A DNA stretch of 64,000 bases from Paragordius varius (Eukaryota > Animalia > Nematomorpha). Of the stretch, positions 650 through 47,154 are shown piece after piece (position 1 is the stretch's first letter; each line of letters opens with the position of its first letter). The stretch spans positions 7,316,001 to 7,380,000 of the forward strand of contig OZ176053.1 of NCBI GenBank assembly GCA_964247055.1, read 5' to 3'. A program made the translations under genes and the position numbers. The notes beneath the pieces were generated by a model. It worked only from the letters and a program-made list of their open reading frames with translations, did no database searches and was not told the DNA's origin.

Positions 650-1207
650 CAGGTTTTTTTTCTTCATCTTCTATTTTGGGGTCACTGAAAATTTTTTTTC
701 GTTTTTTATCAATTTTATTAGTGTTGTTTAAGGCTTTAGGAATAACCCATTTATTAGCAGTGGTATCCCATTCATATATAACATTATGTGTTTCAGGATC
801 TCTGTATATATAGCATCGCTTTTCAAAATCGAATTCCATATTCTTATCCATATTAGTCACGGATGTATTTATATTAGGAATTAAATTATCTGTGCCTTCA
901 ATGCACCATTGTTTCAGTTCAGAGTTATATTTTAGCTTTTGTTTGGATATTGGATCAGTGTAAAGATATGATCCGTCATTAGATTGAGATACTCCATAAC
1001 TAGCCTGATAAAATGCTAAATCATTTTCATCAATCTAAATAAATTATAATATACCTTTGGAAAATAGGCTTTTTTGCTATCATCCCAAATATATAAAATT
1101 CCGTCTGAATCTCGATATGATTTGGTATCTTTTTCAAGCTTTCCAGATTTTTCCAATTCCTCAAGTTTTAGCTGGTGTTTAAAATCGGTGTTTTCCGAAT
1201 CAACCAT
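650..1207 (-). CDS. HTATSF1: HIV Tat-specific factor 1 (Tat-SF1/Cus2-like U2 snRNP factor) homologue, 5' part; exons 1207-1055 and 1034-650; the RRM/UHM exons presumably lie left of the window
   Basis: Removing the 20-nt GT-AG intron 1035-1054 joins ORFs 1016-1273 and 630-860 into MVDSENTDFKHQLKLEEL...YIWDDSKKAYFPK|IDENDLAFYQASYG, matching the HTATSF1 N-terminus pattern EFxEQLRxQEL...YEWDxDKKAWFPKIxEDFIAxYQANYG. A phase-1 donor follows KKP at 649. No RRM exon was found in 1-600. Confidence 0.8.
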
Positions 1208-2516
1208 ATGGTTAGCGATAAGGTTATACCGTGTGTTGTAACAGAATGTATTTATATTCAATTTTTGAACCACATCACAACTGAAAAAATCAAAATATTT
1301 TAAATATTATAATAGTGATTTTTTACCCTATGGATTAAATCTTTTTAAAAGAGCTAAAATTGAAATTCGTAGCTTTAACCGATTGGCAAGATTTTTATAT
1401 ATATATATTTTTTTAATAAGCAATTCATTAGTAAATAAATGTATATTAGGGAATTATATAATTTGCTTTAAAAAACCTTAAAATTATATCATGCCTTAAG
1501 GTTTAATATCACAGAGCTGAATTTCTTGAAAATAATTCTAGCAATTTCAGTTAAAAGTTAATCATCAATTGTTCCTATGTATTAAAAAGTTTATTTTTAC
1601 ATTGTGTCTTCTGGTGTGAGTAATCTAAAATTGAGATATTTTAAAATTTAATCAAATGAGATTTAATTGAAATACCATTTTTTGCTGGTAAAATGCAGCC
1701 TTAAAGCTTTAAATGATAATAATTACGTTTTTCAACCATATTATACATTTAATTGTTGCATTAGCGATTTAATCCAATAAATTTAGGGTTTGAGATCCAA
1801 GATTTAAAATTTGTATCTTAAAATGTATATAAGGTATCAGGCCAAATATAAAAATATGCTTTAGCCTTTAAAGTGAATTATACAAAATCACTTTAAAAAA
1901 ATATAAAATTGTAAAAAACCCTCAACTATTTTGCATAACACAAGTCTAAAAATTTATTTTTCGTTTCCCACAATGTCCATTTCTTTTTAATAATTATTTT
2001 TTATTTTATATAAAAGTATAAGGGCACCATTTTGAAATTAGCTCTAAGTTCAGGCTTCCCACAAAAATTGGGCTTTAATATATATAGAGCATTAAACATT
2101 TTTTAACAAATCTTGTGGGCGCTTTCGAGTTTAATTATTTGCATGCTGTAGAAAATTGGTAATTTAAAAAAATCGTGATATATATATATGACACAGTTTA
2201 TGTACACAAACGGATTTTTCGATTGTTATTTAAACAGAAGTGGTATAATATTCTAAAACTCGTATGTTTAAAAATGAAAATCCCGATTCATTATTCCATC
2301 TAATATTTGAAAGTTTAGTGCGTAATTTATAAATAAAAATTGGTATTAGTCATACCAAATATGTAAGGAGGGAACTTCTAACATTTCTAATAATTAATAA
2401 AATTAACCATAAAATAAAAGTAGTAACTAAATTATATTTATAAAATAAGTGTAAATAACCCCAAAAGCATAAAAATTTGGGTATTGCACCATTCGTATTG
2501 TCATATCGTTCACCCG

Positions 2517-5500
2517 ATGGATTCATCAACTTTTACTGGTATATAAATTTTAAAAATTTAATAGATGATAGCGAAAACGAAAGTTATAGCACCGATTCCA
2601 ATGCGAATTCGCAGAAAAAACGCTTTGCTCATACAATGTCGGAAAAGCGGCGCAGGGATGCTATGAAAGTAATATTCCTTTTATTTTTAGAAAGGTTATG
2701 ATGATTTAACCGATTTAATGGCATCTGCAGACAGCTTTGAGAAATCCTTATTTAATAATCTAAGTAATTTGCTAACAAATAACATATATTATAAAAAGAT
2801 GAGCAAAGCATCGTTATTGCAAAAAAGTAATTGATATATAATTTTCAGCTAAAGATAATATATTGCAATTACAAAAAATTAAATCTGAACATGCGGATGA
2901 AATTGCCAGACTTAATAAAGAAATAGAAGCTTTGGAAATTATGAAAACAAATTATCACAATATTATTGAGAGTTCCCAGAATAAAATAACTGAATTACAT
3001 TTGTCGAGTACCCTTTCTCCCGATCAACTTCAGGCCTATAACAAGAATAACGAAATTAAATCTCAAGTAACATTTATTGCTTTCTGTTTTTATAATACAT
3101 CATATAGAGTAATTTAAGCAAATGATTTCCCTTTGGAGCATATATAATATTCGTTTAAAATAGGATTTGTTTTCGTTTCAATTTTAATTCTAAGCAATTA
3201 GGATTCGAAACATTTGAATTGATTCTCCGAATAATTTATATTCATTTTTTCCCGAATCGGTATCCTAGATAAGCCATATGCGATATCGATATTCAATATT
3301 AAAAAAGGTGAGCTAGGCCCATCAAATCCATTACTGGTGACTTTCCACAAGTTTTTTTATTCCTTCTTTAGATTGTTAAAAAGCCATAAACTAAAATCAT
3401 TAAACATCCGTTCGTTATAATAATGATATGAGAAATCAATTTTAATGAGTAAATTGAAAATAAAATTTTTCGTCTAAAAATGATAGTATATTTTTGTAAA
3501 ATTAAAATTTTAGTTTTTATATTAACACTTTTCTTATTATTAGTGTATAAAAACCGTGTAATCTCCTATTTTTAGTGGCAAATTTTAAAGGTTATAGTTT
3601 AATATTAAAAAACATTTCATCGAAATCCTATCAAAATTTTTTCCCGAAATTTATGATATGTTTTAAATACTTTCCAAATATATGCATATTTATTAACTGC
3701 AAATACTCTTGACAAAATGTTCTGGTCTCTCCCAGATGAATAAAGGGATTTTACCCTGGTTTTCCAGTCTCGCCAAAAAAATATCTGGCTTTCCTGGCTG
3801 ACTAGTGATACGTCTGACGATATTTTTATAAAACATTTCGCATCGCCAAGTTTTAAGGATTCCCAACTGTTGTCACGGCTTTATAGTCTTCACCTAAACC
3901 ATTAGATTTGGGATGGTAAGAAAAAATAAATGCTTATTTTCAAGCAATATTCCTCAAATTTTGACGAAGAAAATTGTGATCCGTTACTAGATACTTAAAA
4001 AATAGGCATCCAAAATTGACCAAAAATTATGTTTAAGCTATCAATAACAATTGTAGATGTAACTTTGTTTTAAAATACAATTCTACACCATACGAATGCA
4101 TTTGTTAAAACTGGCCAGTATTTTTCGTCAAGTAGACCTGTTATATCGATATAAATTTGCTCTGGAAGGGATTAGTAGATTTTATATTCTTCTCAGTAAA
4201 TAAATTATATATGTATCTTGTCGCCATCTTAGATAATATAGATTATTTTGATATTAAAATACAACATAATAATAACAATGGTAATTAAAATGTTTATACC
4301 ATTTTTAAACATGGAATGAAATAATATAAAAATGTTCATATCTAACGCAAGATTATAAGATTCGACATAAAAATATTGCTGTTATAACCAATTGTTATTT
4401 ATAACAATCTACAGAATAAAATGCTTAGATTGATGAGTGAAGTTACGACAAATGATAGTATTGAGTATATTATAAAACACTAATATAATAGTTTTTGGAA
4501 GAGATGGTCATGATGCATAGAGAATAAAGATAAGAAATTTAATAGTGGATATTGAATTGGTCGAAGAACTCCTCTGAAAAAGATTTGAGAATAATGTGAA
4601 TTATAATGTTATTGAATTTGAGTATACATGATTAAGAGATTCTAAAGGTGAAATTTGTTGAACGACCACTTTTAATTAATTAAGGTATATGTATTTTAAA
4701 ATATTTTGCCATAATACATATATATATTAATTGATATTAGTTTATTTTTCCCAGCTTTTAATAGTTTATGACATTTCATCAATGATATTCCCTAAGAGAT
4801 TTTAATGACTATTCCCCTGCTTTTCCTAGCAGCAGTAGGAATAGCCCTAAAAGATTTGGATGATTTAAAAAAGGTTGCTTCTCCACACAACCAGATTTCT
4901 TTTTTCTTTATTGTAAACTGCACTTTAATAGTGTTTATCTTAATAAAATACACATCCACTCATTAGATCAGTGGTTACCCCCAAAAATTTTAAACGTGCA
5001 AAATACATTTTTCTTGTCCCGAGGGCGGACCGTATTATATCGATAAATGTTCATAGCTGTTTGAGAATTTGCAGATTTTTATTCCATAAACAAGTAAATT
5101 TAAGGTTTAATAAATGATTCAGGGCTATGGGGGCTTTGGTTTTAGTACCACTGCTTTACATGATTGATCCATACAAACAAATAATGTTAGGGAATTTAAA
5201 TTTTTTGTAAGACTTTTAAAATCAAAATCACTAAAATCTTTCTGTGTTACTTCTATGCTTAATATTTATTGTATATAACTCTGCTAAAATAATATAATCT
5301 ATTCCTTCATAAGCATAAATCAACTATCTAGGATTTCGATGAAATGTTTTTTAATATTAAACTATAACCTTTAAAATTTGCCACTAAAAATAGGAGATTA
5401 CACGGTTTTTATACACTAATAATAAGAAAAGCGTGAATATAAAAACTAAAATTTTAATTTTCCACAAAATATTATACTATTTTTAGATGTATTTTTAATT

Positions 5501-6730
5501 TACCGATTAAATTTATATTATAACGAACGGATGTTTAATGATTTTAGTTAAATGGCTTTTTAACAATCTAAAGAAGGAATAATAAATTTAACTTGTATAC
5601 TTATAATCATTTCGTCCCAAGCTTTTCGCTGATTTGTGAAATGTCAAAAAAATATTAAAAGCTTTTTAATATTTTTTATATATAATCCCACGAATTTTAA
5701 TTATTCCCTAGGATTTTACCTCATTGTTTAAATAGTTTTATCCAAAAATGGAACAGCTGTTTGGTACATTTCGGTTTACATTTATTACTATCATATGCGT
5801 TTCAACTTCGATTTTCTTGGAATGCCGCCAAATCTAAAACAGCTATTTTCTTAAAAAATACAAAATCGGTAAAATATATGGCTCTCTGTTTTATATTAAC
5901 CATCTAACATTAGATATTGACATATTTTGACTCGCTGATTTTAATTAGTCATTATATTTTAAATTACCATACATCAATCTATTCTTTATTTAATTCTTTA
6001 GAGCTAAAATATGCATTGATGATCATTTTACAGAATTTTAACTCCAAGATAATTGTTATGAAAAATACATGTTCACAATTTTTTATATTTGTTCTTTGGT
6101 AAGATTAATATTCATTTTAATTGGGCGATGGGTTTATTAGTCTTATTAAAAAAGTGATTAGATCATTCAAAAATTATTTTCAGTTTTGTTTGTCTTTGAC
6201 AATGTATTAAAGTTTTGATCAAAGAATTAAAAGTCGGCATATAAATGACAGCATTAACATGGTAGGAATTATATATAAAAATAAAGTTTTTTGTTTAATT
6301 TGAGTATCTCTTTTTATTTTCATTTTTAAACGGGTAAATGAAATAAGTTCAGAGCAACTTTAAAAATATTGATACCTGGAAAATCGTTTATAACTGTAAA
6401 ACACATTTTGTCCTTTTATTATATCCATGACAAAAGTTTTACACAAGGCCACTCCAAATTTTATAGAACTCCTTTGTGTCGGCTCTAAAAAATTATATTG
6501 CTCTATTATATTATTATTATGTGCTTTTATTATCTGTCTAGGTTTTTCACATGCTAATGGACTTCCTTTTCCTAACATTCAATACCACTTTAAACGTTTC
6601 CAATTTTCACCAACTTTCGCGTTCCATGTTAAGTTGGTTAGAAGAATTTTGCCAGTTACAAAACATAAGAGACATTGCCCTACGCGTTTTGCAACAAATT
6701 AACCCAAAATTCCGAAATCAGCAGACATGA
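2517..6730 (+). CDS. MLX: Max-like protein X (bHLH-ZIP plus C-terminal DCD); join(2517..2538,2565..2668,2691..2826,2849..3066,6542..6730), about 222 aa
   Basis: Spliced length is 669 nt with open frame. Basic region and helix 1: KKRFAHTMSEKRRRDAMK|KGYDDL. Helix 2: MSKASLLQKT|KDNI. Zipper: EIARLNKEIEALEIMKTNYHNII. Last exon VFHMLMDFLFLTFNTTLNVSNFHQLSRSMLSWLEEFCQLQNIRDIALRVLQQI matches the MLX DCD (VFQGIMDSLFQSFN...VFSWIEEHCKPQTLREIV). All introns are GT-AG and phase-compatible. Confidence 0.92.
3347..5596. mobile_element. About 2.25-kb element bounded by about 270-280-bp inverted repeats (foldback/MULE-like, non-autonomous), inside MLX intron 4
   Basis: 3347-3630 is the reverse complement of 5329-5596; the inner about 130 bp (TTTTCTTATTATTAGTGTATAAAAACCGTGTAATCTCC...CGAAATCCTA) are near-identical. 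No transposase or TSD was recognised. Confidence 0.6.
4969..5153. mobile_element. Small hAT-like MITE nested in the inverted-repeat element
   Basis: Termini CAGTGGT...ACCACTG; flanking 8-mers CATTAGAT and CTTTACAT match at 6/8, consistent with a decayed 8-bp TSD. Confidence 0.5.
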
Positions 6731-9126
6731 TTATATCTTAGATTTTTTGGGAATGAATTATTGAATTAAAGTTTATATTTAGAGTGGTATAATAATTTAT
6801 AATTATATAACAACCTTAGAATAAATTATATCATATTACTTTTTTATTTATGCCATATATTTTACCCAATTATACATAAAATTTTATCCAAGCCAAATTA
6901 AAATATTTTTTTTCACAATATCGATCTCTGCAAAAAAGCATATACTGCCAAAAATAATGGTGGTGTTATATAATATAAGTTTTATGTCTTATAAATTTAT
7001 ATTTATTTAAAACAAGTAAAATGTTAATGTGTTTCTACGGTAATGATTTAATGTTTTTGTTCGCGCGAGAATTTGCATTGCTAAAAAAACTAAATCAACC
7101 AAATGTGGCAAAGACATAGACCAGATTTTAAAGTGGTATTTTTAAAACATAAATATCTGATAATTTTAATTAAAAAAAGTAATGGTGAACAGGCTTAAAA
7201 ACTATGTAGGTATGTATAAGAAATATTTTCATCCATAAGGTATCAAATGAGGCCAAAAATTTGTGAAACTTGCATACATTTTTAAAATATATATTTAATT
7301 AAAAAAATCTATGCGACAAAGTTTTGCCTTTTTTCCGCTACAATATGTTTTTTTAATCCATAAATGCTTTTATCCTTATTAAAATTCATGTTTGGAAAAT
7401 CTTTTCTTGTAATTACAAAATTAAATATGTTAATTAATTTAGGAGATAACACGATACGCAACATTCTTCAAACTGTAATAGTATTCAATGTATGTATTTA
7501 GGATTAATTATTATCAAATTTAAGCTTTCCCTTGAGAATATCTGGATTTTGGGAGTTTTTTGCCTTAATGAACATATTTAATTATAAAAAAAATATTTAA
7601 AATATTATAAAAAACCGTATTTGTCTGATTTTACAAAAATATAATTTGTGTTTGTAGTGAAAATAAAGGTATGGTCTGTTCGAGATATATGACATAAATA
7701 ACATTAGGATATCTATCCAAAACTTGTTAAGTAAAACCAAACAAAGTATGAGCAGCGCAACAAAATTATTTATATTTAAACTTCTGCATTGAATATAATT
7801 TTTTTATAATTTCATTAATTATCAACTAGCCAGCAGCATATTGGATGTGCCTCTCGAGTTTCCATCTCCCTTTCGGACTTTATATCATACATTGATGTTA
7901 TTGCAGTAAAAGTTAAAATTATAAAAACAAAAGGATAAATATTTTTATTAAAGAAACAGCCATACTTTTTAAACTTTAATTTTTAAAAACAATCGTTTTG
8001 GTTTTGTTTCGCAAAATAGGCGATAAAAAGGTAGCGATTATCCATATGCTTCATAATTATAGATAGATATCAAAGTTTAAAATGGGTGTCTTTTTACATT
8101 TTGTCAAAAATTTTTTAATTTTTACTGTAAATATTTATATAGGTCCAGCAAATCTTAAGTTTTGAACAAACTCAACACTAATTAACCAAATATTTTAAGA
8201 ACCGAAAATAAATTAAATGTAAATTTATTAATTGGTAACTTTATTGGGATAACATAATATCATTACAATAATTTTTAAAAAATCCATATATGGTTTATAA
8301 TATGATTTGCCATAGTTACCTCCTTGTTGGGAGAAAAAAACCCTTAAAGGTTGATATTGTTAAAAAATGTGTTGGATTAGTTACAATCTTAATTTTCTAT
8401 GATTTAGAAACCAATTGATTTAAAGGAATGTTGTTTTAGTTTCATGTGTATAAAATATAAATTTAAATAGAGGAAGAAAACCAGTTTTTTTATCAATTAA
8501 ATGACAAACTGAATTTATAAAATTTAGATGCACAAAAGCATAATTTTTTATATATGATTAGCAAACAACTGATTAGGCTAGTGGGTATTTCATCCCAGGG
8601 CGATTTGAAATTTGAATATTTTAAAAAATATTTTATGTAAGTTAAAGACAAAATATGCTTTTTTTTAGGCGTAATACACTGCGTCCGATCGGGGAAGGGG
8701 GTAAAAATAACCTGATTAATATAAATATTCTGATAGGAAAATGCATTAAGATTATTGCGCTTTTAATGTGGCGGGTAAGTGTGATATAAGAAAGTTATAT
8801 ACACTTTTCTGGTAAGTGCTCCATATCAGAAAATGGCAAGATTTGAGCACAATTTTTTGAATAAAATTTTTTTGGTGAAAGCTAAAGGCTTCATTTCAAA
8901 TATAATTAATTTTTTAATCTACTTAAAAAACGGTATTTTTAAAAAAATTTAATTTTTAGATGTTGGCAGTCCCTAATCTTTTCGCTCTTCTAAAATGGGT
9001 TGGTTCTTTTAAATGAACGCAAAAATGCCGGGATCGCATGATAAAAAATTTTATAATACAAAAAAAAATATTAAAATGCATGTATTTTTTACGAATAGCG
9101 AAATTTTGTTGAAGCGTACTTTATAG

Positions 9127-9701
9127 TATACCGTTTGCACTTTAAGAGTGTCCTTGAACACTTCAAGTTGGTCCTTGATTTCAAGTTGGTCCTTGAACAC
9201 TCCAAGTTGGTCCTTTGACTTATTTGCGTAAATAATTTATTATCGTTTCGATTTTCTATTATTTAACATAAATTTTAAATCAATATCAACTCATAATCTT
9301 TGAGAAACCGTATATCTTTATTAATTTCTTAAATAACTTTGGATATTTTTAAGATTTTAACACGATGAAAAAAGCAATATGTTTTCTAAGTTATTAGTTA
9401 CAATTTTTCATTAAATACATTTAAAGGTTAATCATTTTGATCAATTGAAAAAAAAAGTTTGAAACAAAAAAGTGGTTTTTCAATAAAATTTTTAGAATGA
9501 ATAAATATATATAATAAATAAAGAAAATTAGGTTAATAAAAAATAAAATAAATGCGAAAATTATGGTTAAATCCAAATTTACAAATTTAAGGACCAATTT
9601 GAAGTGTTCAATGACCAACTTGAAATGTTCAAGGACCAACTTGAAGTGTTCAAGGACACTCTTGAAGTGTTCAAGGACACTCTTGAAGTGAAAATGGTAT
9701 A
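9127..9701. mobile_element. MITE with TATACC(A/G)TTT termini and inverted subterminal arrays of a 21-bp unit (TTCAAGTTGGTCCTTGAACAC)
   Basis: The left array (about 9143-9217) and right array (about 9588-9690) are reverse complements; termini TATACCGTTTGCACTT / AAGTGAAAATGGTATA. ORFs 9421-9639 and 9604-9828 simply translate the repeat. Confidence 0.75.
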
Positions 9702-9705
9702 TTTT

Positions 9706-9956
9706 AGGAATGATGGAAACGGTATAAAAATGTTTTTAGACATTATAAATACACTTTTTCTTTTTAATGAGGCTGGACATTTATATCATTTGAGAATCTT
9801 AATCCAAATATTCGTCGAAATTTTATAGAAACATAATTACATATATTTGAAGCTGATCAAATTTAATTAAAATCTGAAGTGAATGATCATTAAATTTTAT
9901 AGAAAAAGTGTTTGAATAATTTAATAAAACGTTTTTATACCGTTTCCATCATGCCT
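9706..9956. mobile_element. About 250-bp MITE abutting the previous element
   Basis: Inverted repeat ATGATGGAAACGGTATAAAAA (about 9710-9730) versus TTTTTATACCGTTTCCATCAT (about 9932-9952). Confidence 0.6.
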
Positions 9957-10074
9957 CCAACTGAAGTACGTACGCTTCAACAAAGTTTTGTTAAAAATTA
10001 TATTTTTTGAAAAAAGTATGCATTTAAAAAACATATTTACTTAATATCAAAATTTAGCATATATTTAAAACGAT

Positions 10075-10700
10075 TATCGGGCAATCCTGAGCGTTTATTT
10101 TAAGATAACCAGCCCATATTGGAATAGCCGAAAAATTTGGAATTTCGGAGTCCACATCTAAAAAAAGAGTTTTTAAAAATATTGTTTTGCCTTTTATAAT
10201 TAATTTATGATATATTTTAGTGGTATCTTTTGGAATAAATTTAGCTTTCAACAAGAAAAATTTATCTAAAAAAATGTCCGCAAATTTTTTCATATTCCAA
10301 TATGGAACAATTACATAAAAGTGTGCATAGCACTCTATATCACTCATAAATACCGAAACCCCCATCATAATATTGATACATTTTCCTATCAAAATATATT
10401 TTCAGCAGGTTAATGTGGGCACAGTGTTATAGGCAATTTTTTTATAAAAATGTAAGAACATTTTCAATTCATTTGCCGTCTTATTCTATAATTTTTTTAA
10501 ACTCCAATGCAACAGGCAATATGTATATTATAGTTAAAATAAGTAAATAATCAACTAAGATTTTAGGCTGCATTTTACCGGCAAAACTGATATTTCACTC
10601 AAAATTAGCTGTTCGTTTCAAGGTTGTTTTGGTGATGTTACAATTTTAGACTCTAAAAGTCACAAATCTGTACAAAATATCATTTTTATCTCATACATGA
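10075..10700 (+). pseudogene. Possible highly decayed PIF/Harbinger (DDE_Tnp_4-type) transposase fragment
   Basis: The + frame reads IAEKFGISESTSKKRVF, resembling the HTH motif xAxxFGISxSTVSR, followed by multiple stops. One weak motif only. Confidence 0.3.
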
Positions 10701-11112
10701 GATCATTGTAACCTTCATAGTAATAGTTGATTTCCTAATTTAGCTCTAGGATATAAAAATACCGCAATACTGGAACAAAAATGAAGAGGTCATGTAGTGT
10801 TAAACAATTATATTTTATCTGCCATTTATCTAAAAACAATTTATTTGTCTTGTGGTCAAATATGATTTGCACCCTAACATATATACAGAAAACTTTTATA
10901 TCATATTCCCATAAAAAATTTTTGAATATATAAATGTGTGAATACATAATAAAAATATAAATTTAAAATATTGTTAAGTAGAAATATGACTAGATGTTAT
11001 GTAATCTATATACAATACTGATAATAAATTTTGCGTTCATCATTCGCAATACTCGTTGACTATGATATTCCAAATGGAGACTAGATTAAAATTTCTTTTC
11101 TTTTTACTAAAC

Positions 11113-12960
11113 TTAAAGGGATACTTTATTGTTAATACTATATGATACATTATTATATATTATCGGTTCGGAAAAGTGAAAAGCCGTTATATTATTAATA
11201 CAATTTAAGTTTTGATTATTATTGTTGTTAGTAGTTTGTAATTTGGATCTATAAAATTCAATCGATTTCCTAATATAGTCGTTGTGTGAATTCATAAACA
11301 TTGCAAACCAACTGGGATTAAATAGAGGAGATCCAAATATGTTTGGTTGTAATTTATTTAACAAAAATAAATTATGATAATTCCAATTCGATTCATTTGG
11401 TGCAGGCCATAGTGGTTTCGAATCATTTGAAATCTCCAACGACGAACACTTTTTTCCGTTCGTTATTGGTTCTAAATTATTTAACCCATTAGGTGTAGCT
11501 GTTGGTTTGGGAAGTATGTTATTCATCGCCATATTGAGATCAGAGTTATGGATTTTAGTTTTTAAACCATTTTTCGTGAATCCCCCCACTTGTCCATCAA
11601 AATATGGAAATATAGATTTGCTATTTGCAAACGGAGATAGGCCATAGCCTGGCCAATTAAAGGCGCCACTCAATGTAAAAGGGTTTTCGTATTTATTAGA
11701 GTCACAATGTTGCGACGTTTTGGTATATGTTTTGCAGGTTTCCTTTCTTTCTTGATATGTCTTTCCCAAAACAGAGGTAGAACCGTTTCCATAATTAATG
11801 CCATTTGATTGATTTAATTTGCGGGGTCGTCCTCTTTTTTTACCTGATTGGGCATTAACAGACCTCTTGAGACATGGCAATTTACTTTCATGATCAATGT
11901 ACCCTTTAAGCGAGTGAAACGTTTGTCCACAAAGTTGACATTGTAATGTAACGCCATTTCTTAATTTTTCGAGCAACTGTTTACGATGACTAGTATAGTT
12001 ATTGTGTTTCGTAAAACGACCACACTTATCGCGCTCTAATCTCCAATCATTGAAAAATTGAATTTTACTACCACGCTTTTTGGTTGGTTTTTCACTTTGG
12101 GAACCATCTCCACCTGAACTGGATTTTCGAAAACTACTGCAAAAACTGTTATGATTAGTGCTATAAAATTCTACATTAGTTTTTAAAGGGGACTCATTTA
12201 TAATATTCTTGGAGAAGGAGTTAGATTTTAACCAATCATATTTGAAGTTTAGAGGATCAAAATTAAATAGGGTTTGTTTACTATTAGTTGGGTTCGGACC
12301 ATTTAATCGTTCATTGAGAAAAACGTTAAAGTTTTGATCAAAATTTGAGGGTAAAGAAGGTAGGGAGAAATTATTAATATCCTTAATATTGTTAATTGGA
12401 TAATTATATAAAGGGTATTTTAACCCATTTGATATGGTGATAGGAGTAACTAATGTTTGACCCGTTCCACATGAGGTATCAAATAATTGAGGTTTGTTTT
12501 TACAGATCTCGGAATCTGATATATTACATTGAGAATAGAGCGAAGTGTAACTCACAGTGTTTAGAGGTAATGTTAAGGTGTCAGGTTTATAATTATTGTT
12601 TTGAGAACTTTCATTTAATATGCTAATAATGCTATGTTTAAAGTCATTTGGGGTTGTTTTGCACAAGTTAGTTTCTAATCTATCCAAATTTGTAAATTGG
12701 TTGTCAATTACCTTATAATTAGCATTGCATTTGTTTTCAAATAATTTTGAAACTTTAGCATCTTGCCGATTATTGAAATAATCTATTTCATCATCATTAA
12801 AATTGTAAATAGATTCTCTAGGAACATCAAGGTCTGATTGGATTACCTAAAAAAATAAATGTTAAATTAGAACTCGATATTTTTTTAAAATGTAAGTTTG
12901 CCCATCAAAGGCGATTTCAGGTTGATAAGTAAACGTTACTTGTTTGGTGTCATAGCAAAA
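11113..12960 (-). CDS. Asn-rich nuclear protein with one C-x2-C-x12-H-x5-C zinc finger and an AT-hook; 5' end unresolved
   Basis: The 524-codon ORF extends in frame without a stop to an acceptor at 12846. It contains CQLCGQTFHSLKGYIDHESKLPC and KKRGRPRK. A candidate 27-nt intron 12847-12873 keeps the frame open to about 12960. The ORF-track start is TTG and there is no nearby in-frame ATG. Confidence 0.75.
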
Positions 12961-30800: not shown

Positions 30801-31546
30801 AATGGATAACAATAGGATAGCTTAAAACTTTATTAAAAATGGTAATAAAATGTTATCTCGTTCCCAATGTACTGAAAATTTATTGAGTATGGAGTGTAGT
30901 AATGTAAGTAAAATAATGTTATACCTTGGGAAATACCCAGAGTTAATTTTCCATATGATAAAAACATATTATGTATTTTTCTACCAAATAGAGAGGTAAA
31001 TGTTTTTTGCCAAAAACAATCAACTCTGCTTATATAGGAAAGATAATTTTTTCAAAAAAATATAACCAACCACATAAGTTAAATAATATCTATCAAGATG
31101 TACTCTAGCGATAAAAATTCATTTATAAAATATATACATATGCATTAAATATAATAAATTTATTTTAAAGTTGTAAAATATTTAGTCCATGATGTAATTT
31201 AAGCTATGAATATTTGTTAAATTTACATGTGTACACTTACAAACGATAAGATAATAAAAATCTAATTTATCATGAAAATTATAATTAGAGGATGAGAAGC
31301 CCATGTATTATTATTAACATTATTTTATAGGATATTCAACAATTTTTATCTAGTCGTCTACTCTACCTTTAAATATCAAAACTATGTGTAAAAAATAAAA
31401 TTCGCATTTATGTAACTCGAATGAGACAATATTTTTGACGTTGTACAGAATGCACCAGAGTTTATGTAAATATTCTAGTCCGATCCGTTGTTCTTATAGA
31501 GTGTTTGCCAAATTAATATCTTGGATTTTTTTAACTTTAAAGCAAA

Positions 31547-32108
31547 TTAACACTTGGATACAACACATTTATTTCAGTCCTTCGATTGTTATTGAGGTAG
31601 TTGGATACCCCAGGCCTCTTTAAAATTATATACTTTAAAAAATATTTAAGGAATTGAAACCATGGCAAAAGCTTGCAATTATATAACATTAATAAACAGA
31701 AATTTTAAAAAATACACATTCAATAATACTTAATATTACTTATTTTGAGGTAAAACCCAAAGTTATAAATTTAGTCAACTTAACATGTGTGCATTAGCTA
31801 AATATAAAAATAATTTAAAATAAGCCATTTTTTCTGTTTCTATCAATGTTAGATGTAATTAAAATAAAAAAATTAGCTTTAATTTTAGCTTTAAATTGCA
31901 AAATTTTGCAAAATTAAAATGGCGTCGAAACAGCTTGCTATGGAAATTTTTATTCACATTCAAATTTTGAGATATTTTGGCTTATTTATACAATTTTTTG
32001 AGGATAGAAGCATGATATTGGGACCGTTTCTTTCAGTAGTTTTTTAAAAACATCGAATCGAATATTGCCTGGGGTACTTAGATACACCAATTTGAATTGA
32101 AGTGTTAA
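31547..32108. mobile_element. About 555-bp non-autonomous element, TTAA|CACTT...AAGTG|TTAA (piggyBac-like MITE), copy 1
   Basis: TTAA on both sides, short TIR, subterminal inverted GATACCCCAGG / CCTGGGGTAC; collinear with 47262-47800 and 51685-52234. Confidence 0.8.
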
Positions 32109-33521
32109 ATAACTTTTTTTATAAAATTTTTAATAGTATAGGCGAAACTATATATTTCATTTTCAAAACATTATAAAAATTTTTGCATGGCTGCAAAGAT
32201 AATTTAAAAATTCTTGTGTTTCATAACCTTTAATAGCTCTCATTAGTTCTATTAAGTCAGTTGTACTCACCAAAAAAAAATTAAATGGCTGCAAAAATAT
32301 TCTTGTCTCAGGGGCTGTGTGCAACCTATTATACCGATTAAAATTTTATGGCTGTTTGACACATAATTATATTCAAAATAAATTCATCAAAAAAAAATTC
32401 AGGACCATAGCACTTCTAGGGTCGCATGCAGTCGATCCGTAGTTTGGGTACCGCTGAGTTAAATATTGACATCGCTCAATATTTAATGACCTTTTGGGCT
32501 TGTTTTATCACACAAGGCCTTTTATAATTTAAATATTTAAAAAAATATTTTTCATTAGTCCAAATTTAAAAATATTCTTTTTTAGCATTTAGGCGCATGA
32601 TACATTTTATTAAATCGTAAAAAAATCTCATCTGAAACTTTCCGCCATTATCTTTTCTTTAATTTATTGTACAGAACAGGCAGAATGTATAATAAAAACA
32701 AAATTTGGAAAGCTTAATTAAATTATCAACAAATGTTTATAATTATTGATATCATCATTAAATTGTGTTTTAAAGCTAATTAATTCAGATCTAGAGTTAA
32801 ACTGTAATTTTTTAAATTTTATAACTATTACAGGTAAATAGGGATTGATAATTTAATTTTCCGAAATTCAAAACAATAAATTGTTTAATAATTAAGTTCT
32901 GAGGCAGAAAACCATCGCGTACAAAAAAATGAAAATGCAATTAAGTGTCAATATACTTAATACCAATCATGCCTTTATCGGTTTTGTATCCTTGTCTTTT
33001 TAAAATGACTTTGTACTGTTTGAATAAATTTGGATAAGTTATGTAACACTTGCATAAAATTTTTAAAAATTAATTTAAAAATTTCAAAATTTTTATGATT
33101 TAAAATATTTATAGTATAAATTAATATTAATAGAGTTAAACATGTTTCCTTCATTTTTAATTACCAAAGGTTTCTAACATGATCGGGGTAAAGGGTTTGA
33201 TTAAATTATAAAAATAAGAAATTAGCTCATTTATAAAAGCTTAAAAGTCCATTTAGGAGTGATAGAAATGGCTTGGATAGTCCAAGAGGCATCAAGTTGT
33301 AACATGATTATATTTATAATAATGATAATCTCATCACATTTTGATTGTATATAAATAATGAAAAAGGCTTGGTTTTTAAAAATAATAAAAACTTATGATT
33401 AAAGATAAATAGCAGTTGTTGATGTATAATAATATTAATCATTATTTTCTAATAGAAAGTTTAATTTTTGCTTTTAAGCAGTTGTCTTAAGGACCTATGA
33501 AAACTTTAATATTCGCCTGTT

Positions 33522-36500: not shown

Positions 36501-37318
36501 TAATATATAAGCCTTTTTATGACGTTAGATAGTTGCATAGTATCATAAAAATTTAATTACATACCATTATATATTATGCGAAAAAAAAAATAGTTTTTTT
36601 GTAATTAAATTATAAATCACCTTTTTACAGTTATTTAGCATTACTAATATATCAAATAAATGTTACACATCCGATTCCATTTTAACTCTCATAAATAATC
36701 TAATTTATTTCCCAAATATCCATTTATTTTAAAAACTTAACTGTTTCCATTATCATTGTTATGGTTCTTTTGTAAAGATTTCGTGTTAAAATGCATTTTT
36801 TTCATAGTTTTTTTTTCGTATGTTTAATGTGGTTAAATTAATGTTGCAAACTTTTTTGTCGCATTAATCAATCAATTCAATTGATTTCAGTTTTTAAATT
36901 ATATATTTAATGAAAAAATGCAACAAAAACAATGTAGTTTCAATAAAAAATCACGAATTTTGGAATTATCTGTTATACTACAATTTTATTTTGGTTTGTT
37001 TTGTTACGAGTTGGGAACAATAAATTATTATTATTATGGTTGGGGTTATTAAGCCTCATAAATATTTATAGGATTTTCACCTACCTCTTTTACCATTCAT
37101 TCTTTTACATCATAATGCTGGATTATTAATTTTTGCAGGAAAAGTATTTAACCTCTTTTTTTTAGTTTATAAAAATCCAAAATGCCGATTTAAGTCACAT
37201 AATCTGTAAAGAGGTTTCGTTTATAATGGTCAAAAACTTTGAACACACTACTCTTAATACCAAATAATTTTATATATATAAAAAAGGTGTAGTAAAATTA
37301 TTTGTATAAGAATAAACT

Positions 37319-40300
37319 TTATTTACGAACTAAATAAAGTAAAAATATTCCAGCATTAGCATCTTCAAATCGATACTTTTTTGACACCAAAAAGTTACGA
37401 ACGACATAATTCAGACGAGAATGTTGACTTTTTTTAGATTTGCCACGTCCCGTAATTATTGTTAATTTATGGAATTTATCGGAATCTGGCCTATGTATGA
37501 AAGCAATCAATAAAATTATAATTACAAGTCAATATCGTTAAAAATGGAATAATAATAAGAGGAATGAATATATCAACACTATTAATCATTGGTACGGTAG
37601 ATAAGAAATTGAAATTATATAGATAAAACGTAAAATCTATAAGACAAATATATCCATAATTTTTTTAAACTTGATTTTACTACATGAAATATCACAACAA
37701 TTTTGTGCAAATAACGACCCCAAAACAATGAGTTTATTACAATAATGTTAGTTCATACGATTTGCCTTAATAATTGAATGTTTACTGTAATTATTTTCTC
37801 AAGGTATAAAACAATCGGTTTTTTAGCAAAAGACAAAGATGTACTTTTTTTCAGACTTGAATTTTAAAATTTAATAAATCTATTAGTTATATTTTTGAGT
37901 AATTTATCTAATTGAAAAAGGTAGGACAAAAAATGTAATCAAAATACAGTTTAAAAATGCGCATAAACATTAATATATGTGATTTCTTTTACAGAACAAA
38001 GAAGTATGGCTATTTTAGAATTTAATTTACCAAAAAAATTTAACCAATCTAGGTATGCAAATTTATATGTATTATCATATACCATATTGTGTTTTATTCT
38101 GTACTTTTTCCATTCAAGAAAATGAGAAAAAAAGTTTATAACACTTACACATGATCAATTATTTTTTGTTGACACCAAGTTATGTATTCTTTGACAACCC
38201 CTAGGACTTCGGAAACGTGTAAACCATGGAGATCAATAGTGTTGGGAGGCAATCCATAGTTATTAACATTTAAAATTAATATTAAGGCTTTAAAGGTTTC
38301 ACAAGTATATTTGTGTTCCACTTCCCTAGCCTTTAAGTCGATAAAATAAATATTACAAACCAAATTTAAGGTAAAACATATTAAGAGTTTAATAAAATAT
38401 CGATAGTGACAAACCCCATTTACACTTCATTCACCCTTTATTTAAATTTAATTCCTAAGCTTTAAAAATTTATCCTTCAGCAGAACAAACTCACCCTATT
38501 ACCTATATACCTTAAAAATTAACATTTAAAACAAATGTTTTTGGGTTTTAATTTGATTTAATTTATGATGTAAATTTTAAGTGAATATTTCAAACATTGT
38601 CAAAAAATATACGTAAATCCAATGATGACCTATCTAATAGAATATAAATAAACTGGATACAAACAAAAAAATGATAAACTGCGCCAAAAGTCTTTTAAGA
38701 TTGGAAGTAAATTTAGGCTATTTTTCAATTTTATTTCGATAAGTGAATTTGAAATGAGTAAAAGTAAATTTAAAGTGTATGCAACAGACACTTTCTTATT
38801 ATAGCCGATAATTAGGATCAAATGTACGGAGAACAATTAGCTTTTTCATGCAAAAAAGTTGAATAATCTCTATTAATTTTATAACTCTGTTTAGTTAGAA
38901 GGAAAGAAAAGATTAAAACATAATTATAAACTATTATTGTCAAAATAAACAATACCGTTTGACGATAATATTCAGCTATACCAGCACGGAAAGCTAAATT
39001 CGAACGCCGAGATGTTTCATAAGCCTTGGTCATGTAGCCACGTTTTACGCTTTGTAGTTCAAAAGCATACCCCCTTATCGCAGTATAAACCAAATTTCTA
39101 TGATAATTTTTTTCGTAATTATTATCGGCTCCGTCTTTAGGATTAGACCCCAGTTTTGATGATGAATTGTTAAGGGAAGAATTGAAAATATTATTATTGG
39201 GGAGTTGTCCGGATGGGTTAGATAAATTTTTATTAACGTAAGATAAGCTTGTTTGAGAAACATTTATGGCACTCAAATCAGGTTTCTATTATGCAAAAAA
39301 ACTAATTTTTATGAAATAATTGGTCGAAAACGTTGCAAAACAAAAATTAGTTAGTAATTAATTATATTTAATTTTAAAAAATTTAAGTTCACCAATTTTA
39401 AACAAAAAAAACCTTGTTACATCCAATTTCTACTATGGTATTTAAATTTGTTAATAATGCTAATTTGATTTGACTAACATATTATCATGTGTTGGACAAC
39501 ATTGCTATAGGAAACAATTATTGTAACGGTCATAATAAACTGAACCCAAACCTTATTGTAAATTGATTCAAAATCATATTCCTCATTCATTTCGGTTTCG
39601 CTAATTTCGTCCTCTTCATAAAAATTTTCATTCAAAGAATTTTTAGCAATCTCTTCATTGTTAGTTATTGGGTTATCATCATTTAAAAGATTATTAATTA
39701 TATTTGTATTGTTATTGTTCAAGACGGAGGATAATTCTTGCTTAGTGGTCGGCGCTTTATTCAAAATATGAGAAAAACGAGGTTTTTCGCCTAAATAATA
39801 ATAAAGCTAATTTAATGAATAATTAAGAGAGATCGGATCAAATAATGTATTAAAGTTTTTCAAAAACCATATAAGCAAAATTAACTTATTATGAGAAAGA
39901 TGTTACTAAAAAATCAAAAAAAAAACTAAAATATACTAGCTTTCTTAGGATCATTTTGAAAAGCAGGCAGAGTGTTATCAAAAGCAACAAACTGTTTTTG
40001 TATAAATTGGGTGGTGGTATCCAAATCGAAACTGTCAAATATATTAATTAATACTTTCATAATTTATAACAAGAACCTTGACGTAACTTTGCGCAAAAAA
40101 GGAACGCTTCGACTTTTGGATTATAATGGATATATGGGCGCAAATGTATGCAAGATAAAATAAGATTTTGATCAATAAAGAAAAAATAACTATAAACATT
40201 CAATAAGTACAGCTTGTTACTATATAAAATTTAATTGAATACATAATTAAAGGTTTTTACTTAAATCCCAAAAATAATTCGTAGAGGAGAGCGGGATCTA

Positions 40301-43300
40301 TTGTGGGAAATTTGGCTTCTAACACGTTGCGATTCAACATGTTTGATATATTGAGATGAGGGGATTCTCGTGCCCAAGGAGGTAGAAAAGTATCTTAAAA
40401 ATTATATAAAATATAACAATTATATTATTAATAAATTTATGTGACATACATCAAATTATATAAGATATATCTGGTGGAAAACCCATACTTATTATAAATG
40501 AAAGATATACACGCTTTGCATATATAAAGTAAAAAATTTGCATCAAGATTTTATCGGGAAGTAGGTGATGTCAGGCTATTAAGATATTAGATCGGATTCG
40601 AAAAAAAGTATACAAAAAATATTATTTACAAACCAATTTTGGTGTCGCTATAAATAAACTAAAATCACAATTTTTATGTACATGGGGTATATTTTTTAAT
40701 ATAAAAAACTGGTGTGAAAAACTGTATATATAGTAAACAATGTTTATTAATAAATCTTACATTGGTGTTTGGAAATGGTTATTTATATAATTTAATATTA
40801 AAATTTAGGATTACATCGATAAAACATCAAAAACGTGATCATTTAATAAATTGAAATTTTCATCCTTAAGTGTTACAGATATGAAGTTTGAGTTAATTTG
40901 AAAATACCTTAAGAAGGTGCTAATGTAATAATACCATAATAATTATTTTTGCAAAAAATGTTATCAGAATATTTAACAATTTCTTAATGATTTTTGTTGG
41001 TAAGTTAAAATATTAAACATTTGCTATGTTGGATTAATTATAGAATAATTAAACATATTTAACACTAGTAGACAAATTTGGACATTTTTAAGCACCACCA
41101 CTCAAACTTTTTAAATTATGACTAATTTCAGTGTTTTAAAACCGAATTTGAAAAAAATTTTGATCCCGCCAATCACAATTTTGAAATTTTATAGGTTTTT
41201 CAATTTTTCAAAAACAAGTGAAAATCGAGAGAAAATTAAATATAACTTTATAATAAAATGTTATTATATTATAAACTTAATATCATTTAATAAAGCGTTT
41301 TAAACTCTATCTTTTAAATATAAATATGTCAAATATCAGAGAGAAAAAAATAGTACGGACTTAAACGTCAAAATTTAGTCTTTTTTTTTTCAAGTGAATT
41401 TTTAACACATATAAAATTTTTTTAAAAAAATACTAAAAAAGGCATTCTATGGTTTAAACTTTCGGCTTTCAGATAGGCTATATTTTTTTTGTTAGTTTTC
41501 GTTCTTTCGACTTATTAGACTTTTTCTCTTGAGTTGATTCTTATAAAAAATCCTTTATTTATACCTAGTGGATATACCTTATTTTTTTAAAATTATTGGT
41601 TTTTTTGTATTTTGAATTTCAGATGGATGTTGTGTAGCCACTTTTAGTAGAATTTACTGTTATGGGGTTGGACCATTTGTATTTACCTAATTTATATTCA
41701 ATTTAATTGTAAAATTTATCTAACTGTATTCTGTAAATTGGTTAATTTGACATGTCAATTTGCCTGGATTGCTTGCAAGTCTCTCTTATCGGACTTTACG
41801 ATTACTTATTGTTATCTTTGCCACATCTGGCATAATTATAGGATCGCTAGGGGGATATGCAGAGCTTGTGCAGCCGCCCGGATCTATCACACTATACTAA
41901 GCCCTTTTCGATTTTTAATACTTTGGCTCTTAGCTTGTTTAGTATCTTATTTAATGTCTAGAATTTGTTATCCATGCATGAAAAATTACTTGTATCGACT
42001 TGCTTGTTTGAATATTTAAACATAGGTACACGAGGAATGATTGTTATTTTTGAATTAAATACAAATTTAAAAATTAAATTTTGGAAAAATCCTATTGGTG
42101 GCCTCAATTTTCTTTTTTGTTTTGGCCTATCCATGCCATTAGGTATCAGAAAATGCAAAAATAATGGGGTGGTGTTGAGCAGTGTAATTAACTTAAAATT
42201 AATTTAAAATAAGGCCATTTTATAATAATACCTAAAATCAATTGTGAAAACAATATTAGAGATTAAGAATGACATATTTTGCAGTAATATACAATTTTGA
42301 AAATAACATGATTACAGCTCTAACATTTTTCTGATATAAACTTTCAGAACAATTTGCCATTCTTTGATATAATCTTTTCATTCTAAACCATGGGGGGTAT
42401 CCAACACGCGGGCCTCCAAAATGTTTTTGCAGCCCGCAAGAAACCTTAGTTTAAAACTTTAGGTGAATCAACTAAAATTATTTTTTCAAACATATTTACC
42501 GATTAATTCTGAATTTTGGTAATATGCGGTCTGCGAAGTTATTTGTTTAGATATCCCTGTTCTAGACAAAAGCACATATTTAATTATTTTGCGATAGGAT
42601 TCTAGATAGATATATAATTTTTCAAAAACATATCTCGTTTCCCTTGAATACTATAAATAATCCATGGATTTATGAAGACATCAAGAAAATCATTTAAACA
42701 TAAATGGCATGTCATATGCTATAAAAAATGATTAAAGTGGTACGGTTATAACCCATCTAATTCTACTTTTTATTTGTACCATATGGCCGAAAGACTATTT
42801 TAACGGGGAATCGAAATTCAACATGAGAAGCGTTTTATATTTCAATTATACAATTAAATGAAAAACCAAACAATTTCATGTGCGCAATAATACCATTTGC
42901 ATTTGAGGTCGAATTTCCTCCATAAATTGTAGGATTTGTGTTCAAAGGGTTAAAAGTATTGTCACTGTAATGAGTATTAAAATAGTTGTCTTGATTATCT
43001 TCTTGCTGTCTCACCCACTTAAAGTATAAGGTTTGCGCCATGGATTGATTAATTTGCACGGAACGATCGAAAAAAGCCAAATCATCTATAAAACCAACAA
43101 AATTAACGGTTATACAATTTGGGTAGATCCAAATAAATAAACTAAATATAGCAAAAAACCTCGGTTAAATGGTTTTGATGGGATTTGATATATCGATTGC
43201 ATTTGAATTAAAAATTCTGGGTCTAAGACAATCGTAGTATCTGAAGGTATAGTCATCGCATTTGCAACTTGGTTTATATTACAATTGAGCATATTTGTGT

Positions 43301-46300
43301 CAAAATTATGGGTGTATGGATATATATTATCAAAATTATATACAAAATTTGGCGTTTGAGCATTGTTAAAATTGATGTTATTTAAATTCATATTATTATT
43401 ATTATTATAATTAATTGCAAAATTATTTGCATTTTTACAGTTATTATACATAAAATTAGTATTGGGAAGTGATAAGCTAAAATTAATGTTATTTAGAGAC
43501 GGAGCTGTAGAAGTAGAAAGTAAGCCTGTTAGCTGAGAGGTATTGAAAGTTGTAGGGTAAAATGGTTTAATATGATCGATCTGAGTTATCATTTCGTGTA
43601 GTGGACGCATTGAATATTTGGGTTTGGGTTCTAAAATGTTAGGCTGCATCCAAAAGATAAAATGCAAATTATAAAATATGAGAATACTAATAAGTTACGA
43701 TATTTATAAATAGAAAATCATAAAACTTCTATTTATTTTAAAATATATAAATTGGAAAAATAATTACCTTAGTTGTTTTTTCCGAATTTTCAGATACTGT
43801 AACATTGTTTTCTATATATATATATATATATATAAATTAATTTGAGGAATTGTTGTTAAAAAAGTATTAGAAAATTAATAATTGTTTCGACAGTGTCAAA
43901 GAAGACATAAAAATAATGCCATAGATCCGCCAACAATTACTTCATTCAACATATATGATTGCCTGTTTATAGCAGACTCGCCCCAAATAATAGGTTAAAA
44001 ATTGGAATTTTACATGATAAACCAATATTTATTTTGCTATTAAAACTTATATTAAGATTTTTAAAAAGAAATATTTGATGCATATGTTTATATTTATTTT
44101 ATTTGTTTTTCAAGATCATCAAAAAGCCGATCCCCAGTTAAATCCTACGTATGTCTTTTGCTATTTCATTAATTATCATCATGAACACTAAAAGGTTCAG
44201 AAAAGAACCTTGTTACACTAGGTGTATATTTATTGGTTCAGAAAGATGATTGAAGGCTTTATATGGAATTTGGAGCCGGAGCTCAAATATTTTGAATGCG
44301 TATTCCAAGATTCTAATAAGACGGAATGAGTCAGGCAGAAGTGAATATCTACTTTTCCCTTAAATATAGGAATGATAAAGTGCCAGTCTGGGATATTTTT
44401 TGTTTATATTCTATGATATTTCTGAACCAATCGGTATACACTCACTAAGGTTATATGACTCCTTTCCGTTTATAATGATGATTAATGAGATTACAATGGA
44501 CATAGGGTTTATTTTAAAAGCTACTTTTTGTTGATGACTTTAATTTAACGGATTCATCTAAGGACGGCCTACTTCAAGTTGGAATATAAAAAATTGCTTG
44601 AAAAATTATGGCTTAAGGTAAATCCAGGTTCGATAAAATATGATAAAAAACCGATCAAGTACCCATGTAAAATTTGAAATCTAGCTGTGAAGGCATACTC
44701 TGTATTGTGTAGTAAATGTAATTTTGACTATTTAAAAATGAGGAAACCTATTATCACCATTATAATTAACTTCATTTGCTCAAAGTGTATCAAAACTTAT
44801 CACTAGCAAAACTCACCTTAAATAACTTCAATTATGTAACTTCAACCCACTTCACATACTTAGTCGACGTTATTTCCGCCAAAGGAGGTATAAGTCATAG
44901 CCTTAAAGACAGGTCTGAAGCATAGAAAAAATAAAAAAAACACATTAATAACATCATTAAACTTAAAACAAAATCACAGTTATATTCTTCCATCATCCGT
45001 CCTTCGCGGACTATGGCGCTGAATGTTGGAAAATGACTAAGTCAAATCTTAATACTCATGATTCTCTACAGCAGGGATGGCCAACCTTTATTTCTCGGGG
45101 GCTACCGTTTTGGCCAAGTAAGTTAAGTATATCACTTTAACAATGCAATATATCTTTATTTGCGGTATGGGGTGACTAGCACAGACCATTTTAAAATAAA
45201 TATTAGGAATGAAGTAAAAATAGGCACCACGGACACACAAGTACATTTATCATTATAAAAAATATTTTTTCCCCATTTATATCTATAACGATGTATTTTA
45301 GCATTTTTCTGGCTTGAATTTTAATCACATTAAAATAAAAGTGTAAGGGATACCTGCTTATGTTATTTTGCTAAATTTAAACAATGACGGATTGATTATG
45401 TTTTGTAATAACAGTTGTAAAATCCGTAATATAATGATAATTGATATTTAATAGAAAATTAATTGAAAGATAATTATAAACAGAACTTATAAAAAGTTCG
45501 AATAAAATACATATGATTAATTAAATATATTAATATAATAAATCTTAGTTAAATATAAATTTTTTAGGCAGTAAATTTTTTCACAAAAAAATAAATGAAA
45601 ATTAAATGATAAGTATATAATACTATATACATTTTATCCTAATTAAAATCAGACATCAAATTTAATATTGAATTATTTAACGAATTATTGGACATATACT
45701 TATATAATAAGATGTCGAAAGATTAATTATACCGTGTTATTTAATAAACGGGAGCAAATAAATTTTTATCAGAATTAAATAAATTCATCAATGAGTTGAG
45801 ATATATACTTCTGGGAAAAAGTTGTGCAATTTGAATAAAATTTTTAAAAGCCACCAATACAATACCTCTTTCACTCAACAAAATATCTATCGTTGCATTA
45901 AGATCTTGATTGTGTTCAGTAAGTAAGGAACATGCGTTAATTTCAGATAGGTGTGGAAATAAATTTTTCAAAATTTGGAAATTAGTTGAATCTTTTAGTT
46001 CATATATATCCATTTTAGTTGTGGAATGGACAATGGAACTTTTGGTTTCAGTAGAGGAGATATGTAATTTTTCCGTTATTAAATTATTTTGATTTTCAGT
46101 GTGGTGGAGTTGCGTTTGAGTACCAATACAATTCTGATTGCAATTTACTGTATTAGAGGTCTGCATAATTGATGAGGCAGGTTTCGCTGTTTTTATTTTT
46201 AATCGGTGTAATCCGTGATAAAAACCTGAATTAATTTTGTCCAGAACAGAAAAATCGCCTTTGATAGTTTGTGTATGGGCAGTTTTTTGGACTATTGTAT

Positions 46301-47154
46301 GTAATTTTCTTAAATTTTCAACCAACGGTTCTGAAACTTTTGCGTGACTATTTTGTTTGATCAGATCTAAATCAAAAGCAATGACATTCTCTGTCAATGC
46401 TGGAAAAGTTAATGCTCTTTTATTAACTTTATCTAATGATATTTTATTTAAAAATGGATAAGATTTTGATTTAAGTTTAGGTGGTGTAAATAATTGAGGA
46501 ATTTGCACGTCTTTTAGGGGACTCATTTTTTTTAAAGCAATATTCTTGGGATAATATTTATCTATGTCTTCCTGAGTTATGCGCTCAAATCTTGATGACA
46601 TGTTATTTAAAACGTACTTGTCTACATTGTGACTATTCAATCTAAATTTAGAAAAAATTAAACTTGGCCAAATATGGTATTTTATATTTCCACCATGTAT
46701 TAGGCTCTAACAATAAAATTTCATAACGATTATAACGTGCCTTTGATAATTAATTTATAAACTAATTTAATGTAAGGATCCATTTCCCACAATGATAAAT
46801 TCGTGTTGTCAATAAAAACTAAATTAATTTTTTCTTCTTCCATTGCATTTTTTACTTTATATGAAAATCACAAAATACCTCTTTCAAAATTCCATTTGTG
46901 TGCAATATCCAATTCCTGTCCAATAAAAATATATTTTCCGTTTTGCATAAAATATTCATCAGTCGAAAATATTTTGCCGAAACCTAAAGTTTCAGTTATA
47001 TGCCTTAAAATAAAAAATAAATTAACTTCGCTAATGTTGTTTTTCCGCTACCTGGTAACCCTCGGAGTATGCATAATATATGTTTATTTTCCGCGATGCT
47101 TTTATTAAATTTTTCAAGCAAAATTTCGTCCGCTACTGGTAGCCTATTTATCAT
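37319..47154 (-). CDS. N4BP2: NEDD4-binding protein 2-like (polynucleotide kinase, CUE-like, DUF1771, Smr); exons 47154-47027, 47003-46879, 46854-46763, 46740-46664, 46641-45866, 43811-43768, 43643-43160, 43085-42894, 39790-39552, 39285-38956, 38330-38149, 37490-37319; about 946 aa
   Basis: PNK motifs: ILRGLPGSGKTTLAK, STDEYF, AHKWNFER, IDNTNLSLWEMDPY, EPNTWWK. CUE-like: FQILKNLFPHLSEINACSLLTEHNQDLNATIDILL. DUF1771-like: YTAIRGYAFELQSVKRGYMTKAYE. Smr: IDLHGLHVSE and ITGRG. All junctions are GT-AG and phase-compatible, total 2841 nt. The donor at 42893 has a same-phase alternative, so that boundary is uncertain. Confidence 0.92.
41063..42184. mobile_element. About 1.1-kb non-autonomous DNA element (CACTAG start, TAA/TAA flanks) in an N4BP2 intron; second copy at 54560-55740
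   Basis: Collinear blocks AATTTGGAC...AGCACCACC, TTTATACCTAGTGGATAT, TTTGAATTTCAGATGGATGTTG, AAAAATCCTATTGG and AATGGGGTG are shared with the second copy. This copy carries an extra GC-richer insert of about 180 bp at about 41732-41910. Confidence 0.7.
42389..42559. mobile_element. hAT/Charlie-like MITE
   Basis: Imperfect TIRs CATGGGGGGTATCCAAC / GTTTAGATATCCCTG and 8-bp TSD TTCTAAAC / TTCTAGAC, matching the NTCTAGAN preference of Charlie elements. Confidence 0.7.
44190..44725 (+). pseudogene. Decayed RTE-clade non-LTR retrotransposon reverse-transcriptase fragment, antisense within N4BP2 intron 5
   Basis: Motifs in the expected order across frameshifts: LYMEF...RIPR, FIMMINEIT, LLFVDDFNL (YADD), LLEKLWLKVN, KYPCKI*NLAVKAYSVLCSKC. 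Confidence 0.7.

Follow-up and report, generated by a model that had tools for sequence, protein, structure and literature searches.

Candidate introns of 20 to 26 nucleotides beside kilobase-scale introns in three predicted genes of a hairworm

Tiny introns in other lineages and in the hairworm window

Introns shorter than 30 nucleotides (nt) are already known in animals. A survey published in 2026 compared 51 animal genomes, recorded such introns in no groups other than myxobolids and dicyemids, and tied them to a parasitic life and reduced genomes (PMC13644364); Nematomorpha are absent from the main text of that survey. The median intron length is 22 nt in the myxobolids Thelohanellus kitauei and Myxobolus rasmusseni and 27 nt in Henneguya salminicola (PMC13644364, PMC4986447), with Thelohanellus introns spanning 20 to 25 nt (PMC4986447). 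Myxobolids conserve the U2 snRNA and U2AF1/2, and weak A's upstream of the AG have been proposed as their branch site (PMC13644364). Dicyemid introns have a mean length of 38 nt in Dicyema japonicum and a median of 27 nt in Dicyema sp. (PMC6736024, PMC6543705). In Trichomonas, type B introns of 23 to 28 nt occur beside type A introns of 50 to 196 nt (PMC12316389), and ciliate introns measure 15 to 16 nt in Stentor and ~25 nt in Paramecium (PMC9505925, PMC5014332); Stentor keeps its snRNAs, and its branching factors diverge (PMC9505925). A literature search confined to papers readable without a subscription found none on short introns or the spliceosome in Nematomorpha.

We analyzed a window of 64,000 nt from the hairworm Paragordius varius, in which three predicted genes are readable only if eight stretches of 20 to 26 nt are cut out as introns. 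Judged from the genomic sequence, all eight are very probably real introns. Our main reading, to which we assign a probability of roughly 0.86, is that they are genuine, ordinary U2-type introns that have shrunk to 20 to 26 nt and lie in the same genes as introns of 74 to 3475 nt. An earlier note on this DNA had proposed ultra-short spliceosomal introns in an animal genome, a claim that alignment, reading frame, and independent DNA now support. The nearest published parallel, the myxobolids (PMC13644364, PMC4986447), was absent from that note.

As in myxobolids, whose genomes are AT rich too, the hairworm segments are 20 to 27 nt long, have GT-AG ends with donors of approximately GT+A, lack a clear pyrimidine tract, include adjacent short introns, and belong to a parasitic animal. 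Unlike those of myxobolids, they occur in what is probably another phylum, in a gene-sparse, repeat-rich genome in which half of the modelled introns measure 74 to 3475 nt; each of the three genes has them at its 5' end, and they were identified here in genomic DNA. Dicyemids are likewise animals with GT-AG introns shorter than 30 nt and reduced signals, but nearly all introns of Dicyema (67.5 Mb, 36.7% GC) are short, whereas the window has 26% GC and many kilobase-scale introns. Trichomonas shares the presence of two size classes in one genome, its short class being T rich with looser donors. It is, however, a protist with very few introns whose conserved branch motif adjoins the AG, whereas the hairworm segments show no branch consensus and there are several introns per gene. 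Ciliates also have very short, AT-rich GT-AG introns and splice them with a spliceosome that contains all snRNAs. Nearly all ciliate introns are tiny, however, whereas one spliceosome in the hairworm would have to handle introns of both 20 nt and 3.5 kb.

Eight segments in three gene models

Read on the coding strand, the eight main segments and a ninth, candidate segment all have GT at the start and AG at the finish (9/9 at the positions given below) and measure, in window order, 20, 26, 22, 22, 27 (the candidate), 22, 22, 24, and 23 nt. Their donors are GTAT, GTAA, GTTA, or GTTT and their acceptors TAG, CAG, or AAG; the donor consensus of the eight is GT followed by A or T, with nothing further shared. 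The earlier note's description of relaxed donors and nearly pure A/T interiors held: G or C occupies 9 of 149 interior bases, relative to 31% of the flanking exons, and this proportion lies below that of all 20,000 equal-length random draws, whether taken from exons or from the window. The window itself is 26.4% G+C, matching the 26.9% of Gordionus montsenyensis, is ~12% coding, and is rich in transposon remains. Look-alike segments (at least 85% AT) arise by chance at ~2 per kb on each strand, and the probability that a GT..AG segment of 20 to 27 nt fits the frame within 6 bases of a random site is 5.5%. Since look-alikes are this frequent, only homology and frame count as evidence for introns.

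Retention of any single one of the eight segments leads to a stop within a few codons, whereas their removal yields intact frames of 1003 amino acids (aa) for N4BP2 and 222 aa for MLX. The coordinates, lengths, and GT..AG ends previously given for the eight were confirmed. The earlier note had overlooked that N4BP2 extends through long introns to 37319 and MLX to 6730.

The N4BP2/NONU-1 gene (37319 to 47154, minus strand) was modelled with 13 exons. Its single predicted protein combines a PNK-type P-loop kinase, a CUE domain, and a C-terminal Smr domain, and the kinase-CUE-Smr layout is that of NONU-1/N4BP2 of animals and choanoflagellates (10.1101/674358). Pfam searches of the exons returned AAA_33 (weakly), CUE (E = 3e-7), and Smr, the last split over the final two exons (positions 1 to 25, then 26 to 55). 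A profile built from 78 viral homologues of the kinase domain at the N terminus (polynucleotide kinase), all encoded without introns, was aligned to the raw DNA with any GT-AG intron of 10 to 200 nt allowed, and a smaller, 12-sequence version was also built. In 6 of 6 settings, the 78-sequence profile blindly chose exactly intron 1 (47004 to 47026, 23 nt, just after the P-loop), intron 2 (46855 to 46878, 24 nt, a multiple of 3 but with an in-frame stop inside), and intron 3 (46741 to 46762, 22 nt, which frame and stops also indicate), all on the minus strand; with the 12-sequence profile, the third intron was lost solely at the highest penalty. The spliced alignment scored 111.7 bits, versus 61.4 bits when introns of at least 30 nt were forced and 40.9 bits without introns, and the maximum over 24 other stretches of the window was 27.0 bits. 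When the 12-sequence profile was aligned free of the GT-AG rule, it still opened gaps of 26, 24, and 22 nt near the same sites. Scored singly, exons 1, 2, 3, and 5 matched profile positions 2 to 19, 24 to 59, 65 to 91, and 113 to 130, respectively, and exons 1 to 3 tile the profile without gap or overlap once unaligned ends are allowed for.

Intron 4 of N4BP2 (46642 to 46663, 22 nt, GT-AG, minus strand) is placed by frame and stops and is favored by the EPNTWWK stretch that its removal leaves intact, a form of the EPxTWWK motif that we take to be typical of animal N4BP2 proteins. A DNA pattern search for this motif matched unrelated viral proteins. Here, the aligner favored a 49-nt alternative that would delete the EPNTWWK stretch; the viral profile does not fix this intron because the viral proteins are without the short insert at that place. 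Introns 5 to 12 measure 2235, 74, 2500, 229, 146, 266, 625, and 658 nt, the middle long ones being a model fixed by frame only.

The MLX gene (Max-like bHLH-Zip; 2517 to 6730, plus strand) was modelled with five exons separated by GT-AG introns of 26, 22, and 22 nt and a fourth intron of 3475 nt. Intron 1 (2539 to 2564) is the sole GT/GC-AG option within 45 nt that joins the ATG at 2517 to the frame. Intron 2 (2669 to 2690) lies in helix 1 of the bHLH domain, and its retention would stop translation at aa 52; retention of intron 3 (2827 to 2848) would do so at aa 89. Several short introns after 3066 were tried and failed, the real last exon beginning at 6542, after intron 4 (3067 to 6541). Tool support for the identity of the gene is weak, comprising a Pfam HLH match on exon 3 (E = 0.049) and a weak match to the BMAL1 basic region in the PDB; the remainder is a motif that we assume to be that of the family. 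A 280-bp element is present in two inverted copies (86% alike) inside intron 4, at 3353 to 3630 and 5329 to 5586.

The 5' coding part of HTATSF1 (650 to 1207, minus strand) comprises exons at 1055 to 1207, with the ATG at 1207, and at 650 to 1034. Its first coding intron (1035 to 1054, 20 nt, GT-AG, phase 0) would, if retained, introduce a stop at aa 63, whereas its removal joins ...AYFPK to IDEND..., two halves of an N-terminal motif that we presume to be that of the HTATSF1 family, the search tools having given no match. HTATSF1 is itself a U2 snRNP-associated splicing factor. An intron of 20 or 23 nt from the donor at 649 gave an immediate stop, so the next intron is probably long; it likely begins at 649 and extends beyond the edge of the window. 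HTATSF1 (start at 1207, minus strand) and MLX (start at 2517, plus strand) lie back to back, 1.3 kb apart.

The ninth segment, a 27-nt GT-AG candidate (12847 to 12873, minus strand), lies upstream of a 577-codon zinc-finger/AT-hook-like frame. Its coordinates, GT..AG ends, and a credible acceptor stood up, but its status as an intron was not confirmed, there being neither an in-frame ATG upstream nor a homologue; the donor for this acceptor may lie far upstream. The 577-codon frame itself (11113 to 12846, minus strand) contains a single C2H2-like finger together with a GRPRK motif resembling an AT-hook, and a homologue search with it was blank.

Elsewhere in the window, two tandem paralogous frames with a common C-terminal motif and no Pfam match occupy 58196 to 60448 (minus strand), and a tandem array of 117-bp units (93 to 96% alike) lies at 56843 to 57280. 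Inverted arms of 21-bp repeats at 9122 to 9706 resemble a non-autonomous DNA transposon. The stretch from 53000 to 54680 (minus strand) is broken and G+C richer and by eye resembles a decayed LTR-retrotransposon pol, with an RNase H-like motif, also seen by eye, at 54403 to 54678 (minus strand). Old dispersed repeat families, 67 to 75% alike, pair 41075 to 42175 with 54560 to 55735, group 31530 to 32112 with 47252 to 47800 and 51668 to 52239, and pair 48460 to 49522 with 50393 to 51474; one copy sits within an N4BP2 intron. The ~22 kb from 15500 to 37300 hold no recognizable gene. The word CAGCTG occurs only three times in the window (5754, 13104, and 62096), each time outside the modelled exons.

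Database searches were run exon by exon, and the joined translations and the profile alignment were computed on the window only. Exon-by-exon searches of proteins, metagenomes, and the ESM Atlas and an exact look-up were blank, a search of representative proteins yielded two repetitive junk matches only, and the PDB yielded nothing beyond the BMAL1 match. Since the exon searches gave no animal homologue, the five introns other than N4BP2 introns 1 to 3 are placed by frame, avoidance of stops, and presumed family motifs.

These gene models bear on the reading that the transcripts are spliced through other, longer (at least 30 nt) GT/GC-AG pairs nearby, giving proteins with small deletions. Frame-compatible longer alternatives do exist for seven of the eight segments, and the viral profile preferred one of them at N4BP2 intron 4. 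However, a ban on introns shorter than 30 nt costs ~50 bits and loses the P-loop exon, and the longer alternatives would delete residues of bHLH helix 1 or the HTATSF1 motif, while MLX intron 1 has no alternative at all. We therefore regard splicing through longer pairs as quite unlikely.

Independent DNA and other routes of removal

DNA from other samples was compared over 600 to 6500, where the three runs used behaved as DNA. In X4, a separate sample that bears the same species label (~300-fold), a 551-base contig over 2494 to 3044 differs from the window by 8 substitutions and no gap, and all three MLX segments have the same length; a second sample (X6) covers two of them, introns 1 and 3, ungapped. 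The two listed differences in MLX exon 4 are synonymous in the predicted frame. The pieces neighboring 2494 to 3044 in X4 differ by 5 to 10% with many indels. Independent DNA is thus at hand for the three MLX segments, as colinearity with homologues is for N4BP2 introns 1 to 3.

The divergence of X4 in non-coding DNA over 600 to 6500 (5 to 10%) suggests a cryptic species or deep alleles. X6 and a third sample, X3, are labelled as other organisms and contain near-identical DNA at a depth of 2 to 7, as from a host sample or carry-over. The first copy of the 280-bp element is missing in X3 and X4 (joints from 3359 to 3633/3664), which makes it a polymorphic insertion.

We infer that the eight segments are removed from the RNA. 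Removal by a non-spliceosomal route, namely, somatic DNA excision or an RNA nuclease-ligase, would account for segments of a size that is hard to fit into a standard spliceosome and that is near that of ciliate eliminated sequences. Yet a search of the ~300-fold DNA run revealed no excision joint at any of the four segments that it covers, the segments show no obvious terminal repeats or hairpins, and the GT-AG ends and donors are common to the tiny and the long introns; we consider such a route highly improbable. Assembly errors, or frameshifting insertions into dead genes, are very hard to credit as the source of the segments. AT-rich, low-complexity DNA is error prone, but nothing directly favors this reading. 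The MLX segments are ungapped in contigs of two other samples, one of them from a diverged individual, which largely excludes assembly error for those three; GT..AG ends and fitting lengths occur in 8 of 8 segments (at a 5.5% chance each); and the genes are otherwise intact, with low divergence and synonymous changes in MLX.

Splicing signals, size classes, and significance

For the main reading, of shrunken but ordinary U2-type introns, the splicing signals are sparse. Like the class described in PMC13644364, the segments are shorter than 30 nt with GT+A/T donors, and they contain no separate pyrimidine tract. As the earlier note had also observed, no branch-point consensus is evident: an A is found at position -8 from the acceptor in five of the eight, and others at -6 to -11, which is near the expectation from base composition, and no significant branch-point motif was detected in the eight. 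Neither mark of U12-type introns, the RTATCCTT donor or the TCCTTAAC branch site, was found in any of the eight, and an Rfam search of the window for snRNAs returned none. Judged from published myxobolid and ciliate cases, such introns would most likely be recognized as units in their own right, by intron definition. A donor of no more than GT(A/T) may suffice, an A some 6 to 11 nt ahead of the AG could serve as the branch point with no distinct pyrimidine tract, and the difference in A/T content from the exons might help.

Two suggestions made previously were not supported. A modified spliceosome is not implied by introns of this size, since the U2 snRNA and U2AF1/2 are retained in myxobolids, whose median intron can be as short as 22 nt (PMC13644364). 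Nor are relaxed donors peculiar to the tiny introns: the long introns of N4BP2 (74 to 2500 nt) have the same loose GT+A/T donors, which makes donor weakness a property of these genes.

The 17 fully modelled introns of the window fall into two classes, 8 of 20 to 26 nt and 9 of 74 to 3475 nt, and no intermediate lengths occur. Tiny introns take up the first 4 of the 12 intron positions in N4BP2 and the first 3 of the 4 in MLX, and in HTATSF1 the first coding intron is tiny. The tiny-first order in N4BP2 would occur once in 495 random orders, for a pattern noticed post hoc. Selection against insertions near the promoter, or a cap that aids recognition of early introns, can be offered as speculations on its cause.

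Probably new here are the hairworm lineage, the coexistence of two size classes in a genome that is not compact, and the bias toward 5' positions. We tentatively propose, as a possibility that we hold somewhat below even odds, that a hairworm lineage is a third independent animal origin of 20- to 27-nt introns, reached without genome compaction; that one spliceosome processes a discrete tiny class and kilobase introns in a single transcript, the tiny class being concentrated at the 5' end; and that lineage-specific changes of the spliceosome allow this.

Because introns of such lengths often fall outside what standard aligners and gene finders accept, the annotation of hairworms might be affected, as might gene losses claimed on that basis. 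The clustering toward the 5' end can be tested directly. If our proposal is true, recognition of a 20-nt and a kilobase intron could be compared within one gene, and the hairworm, an ecdysozoan parasite whose repeat-rich genome also has long introns, would form a third lineage that supports the link of tiny introns to parasitism and breaks their link to compaction.
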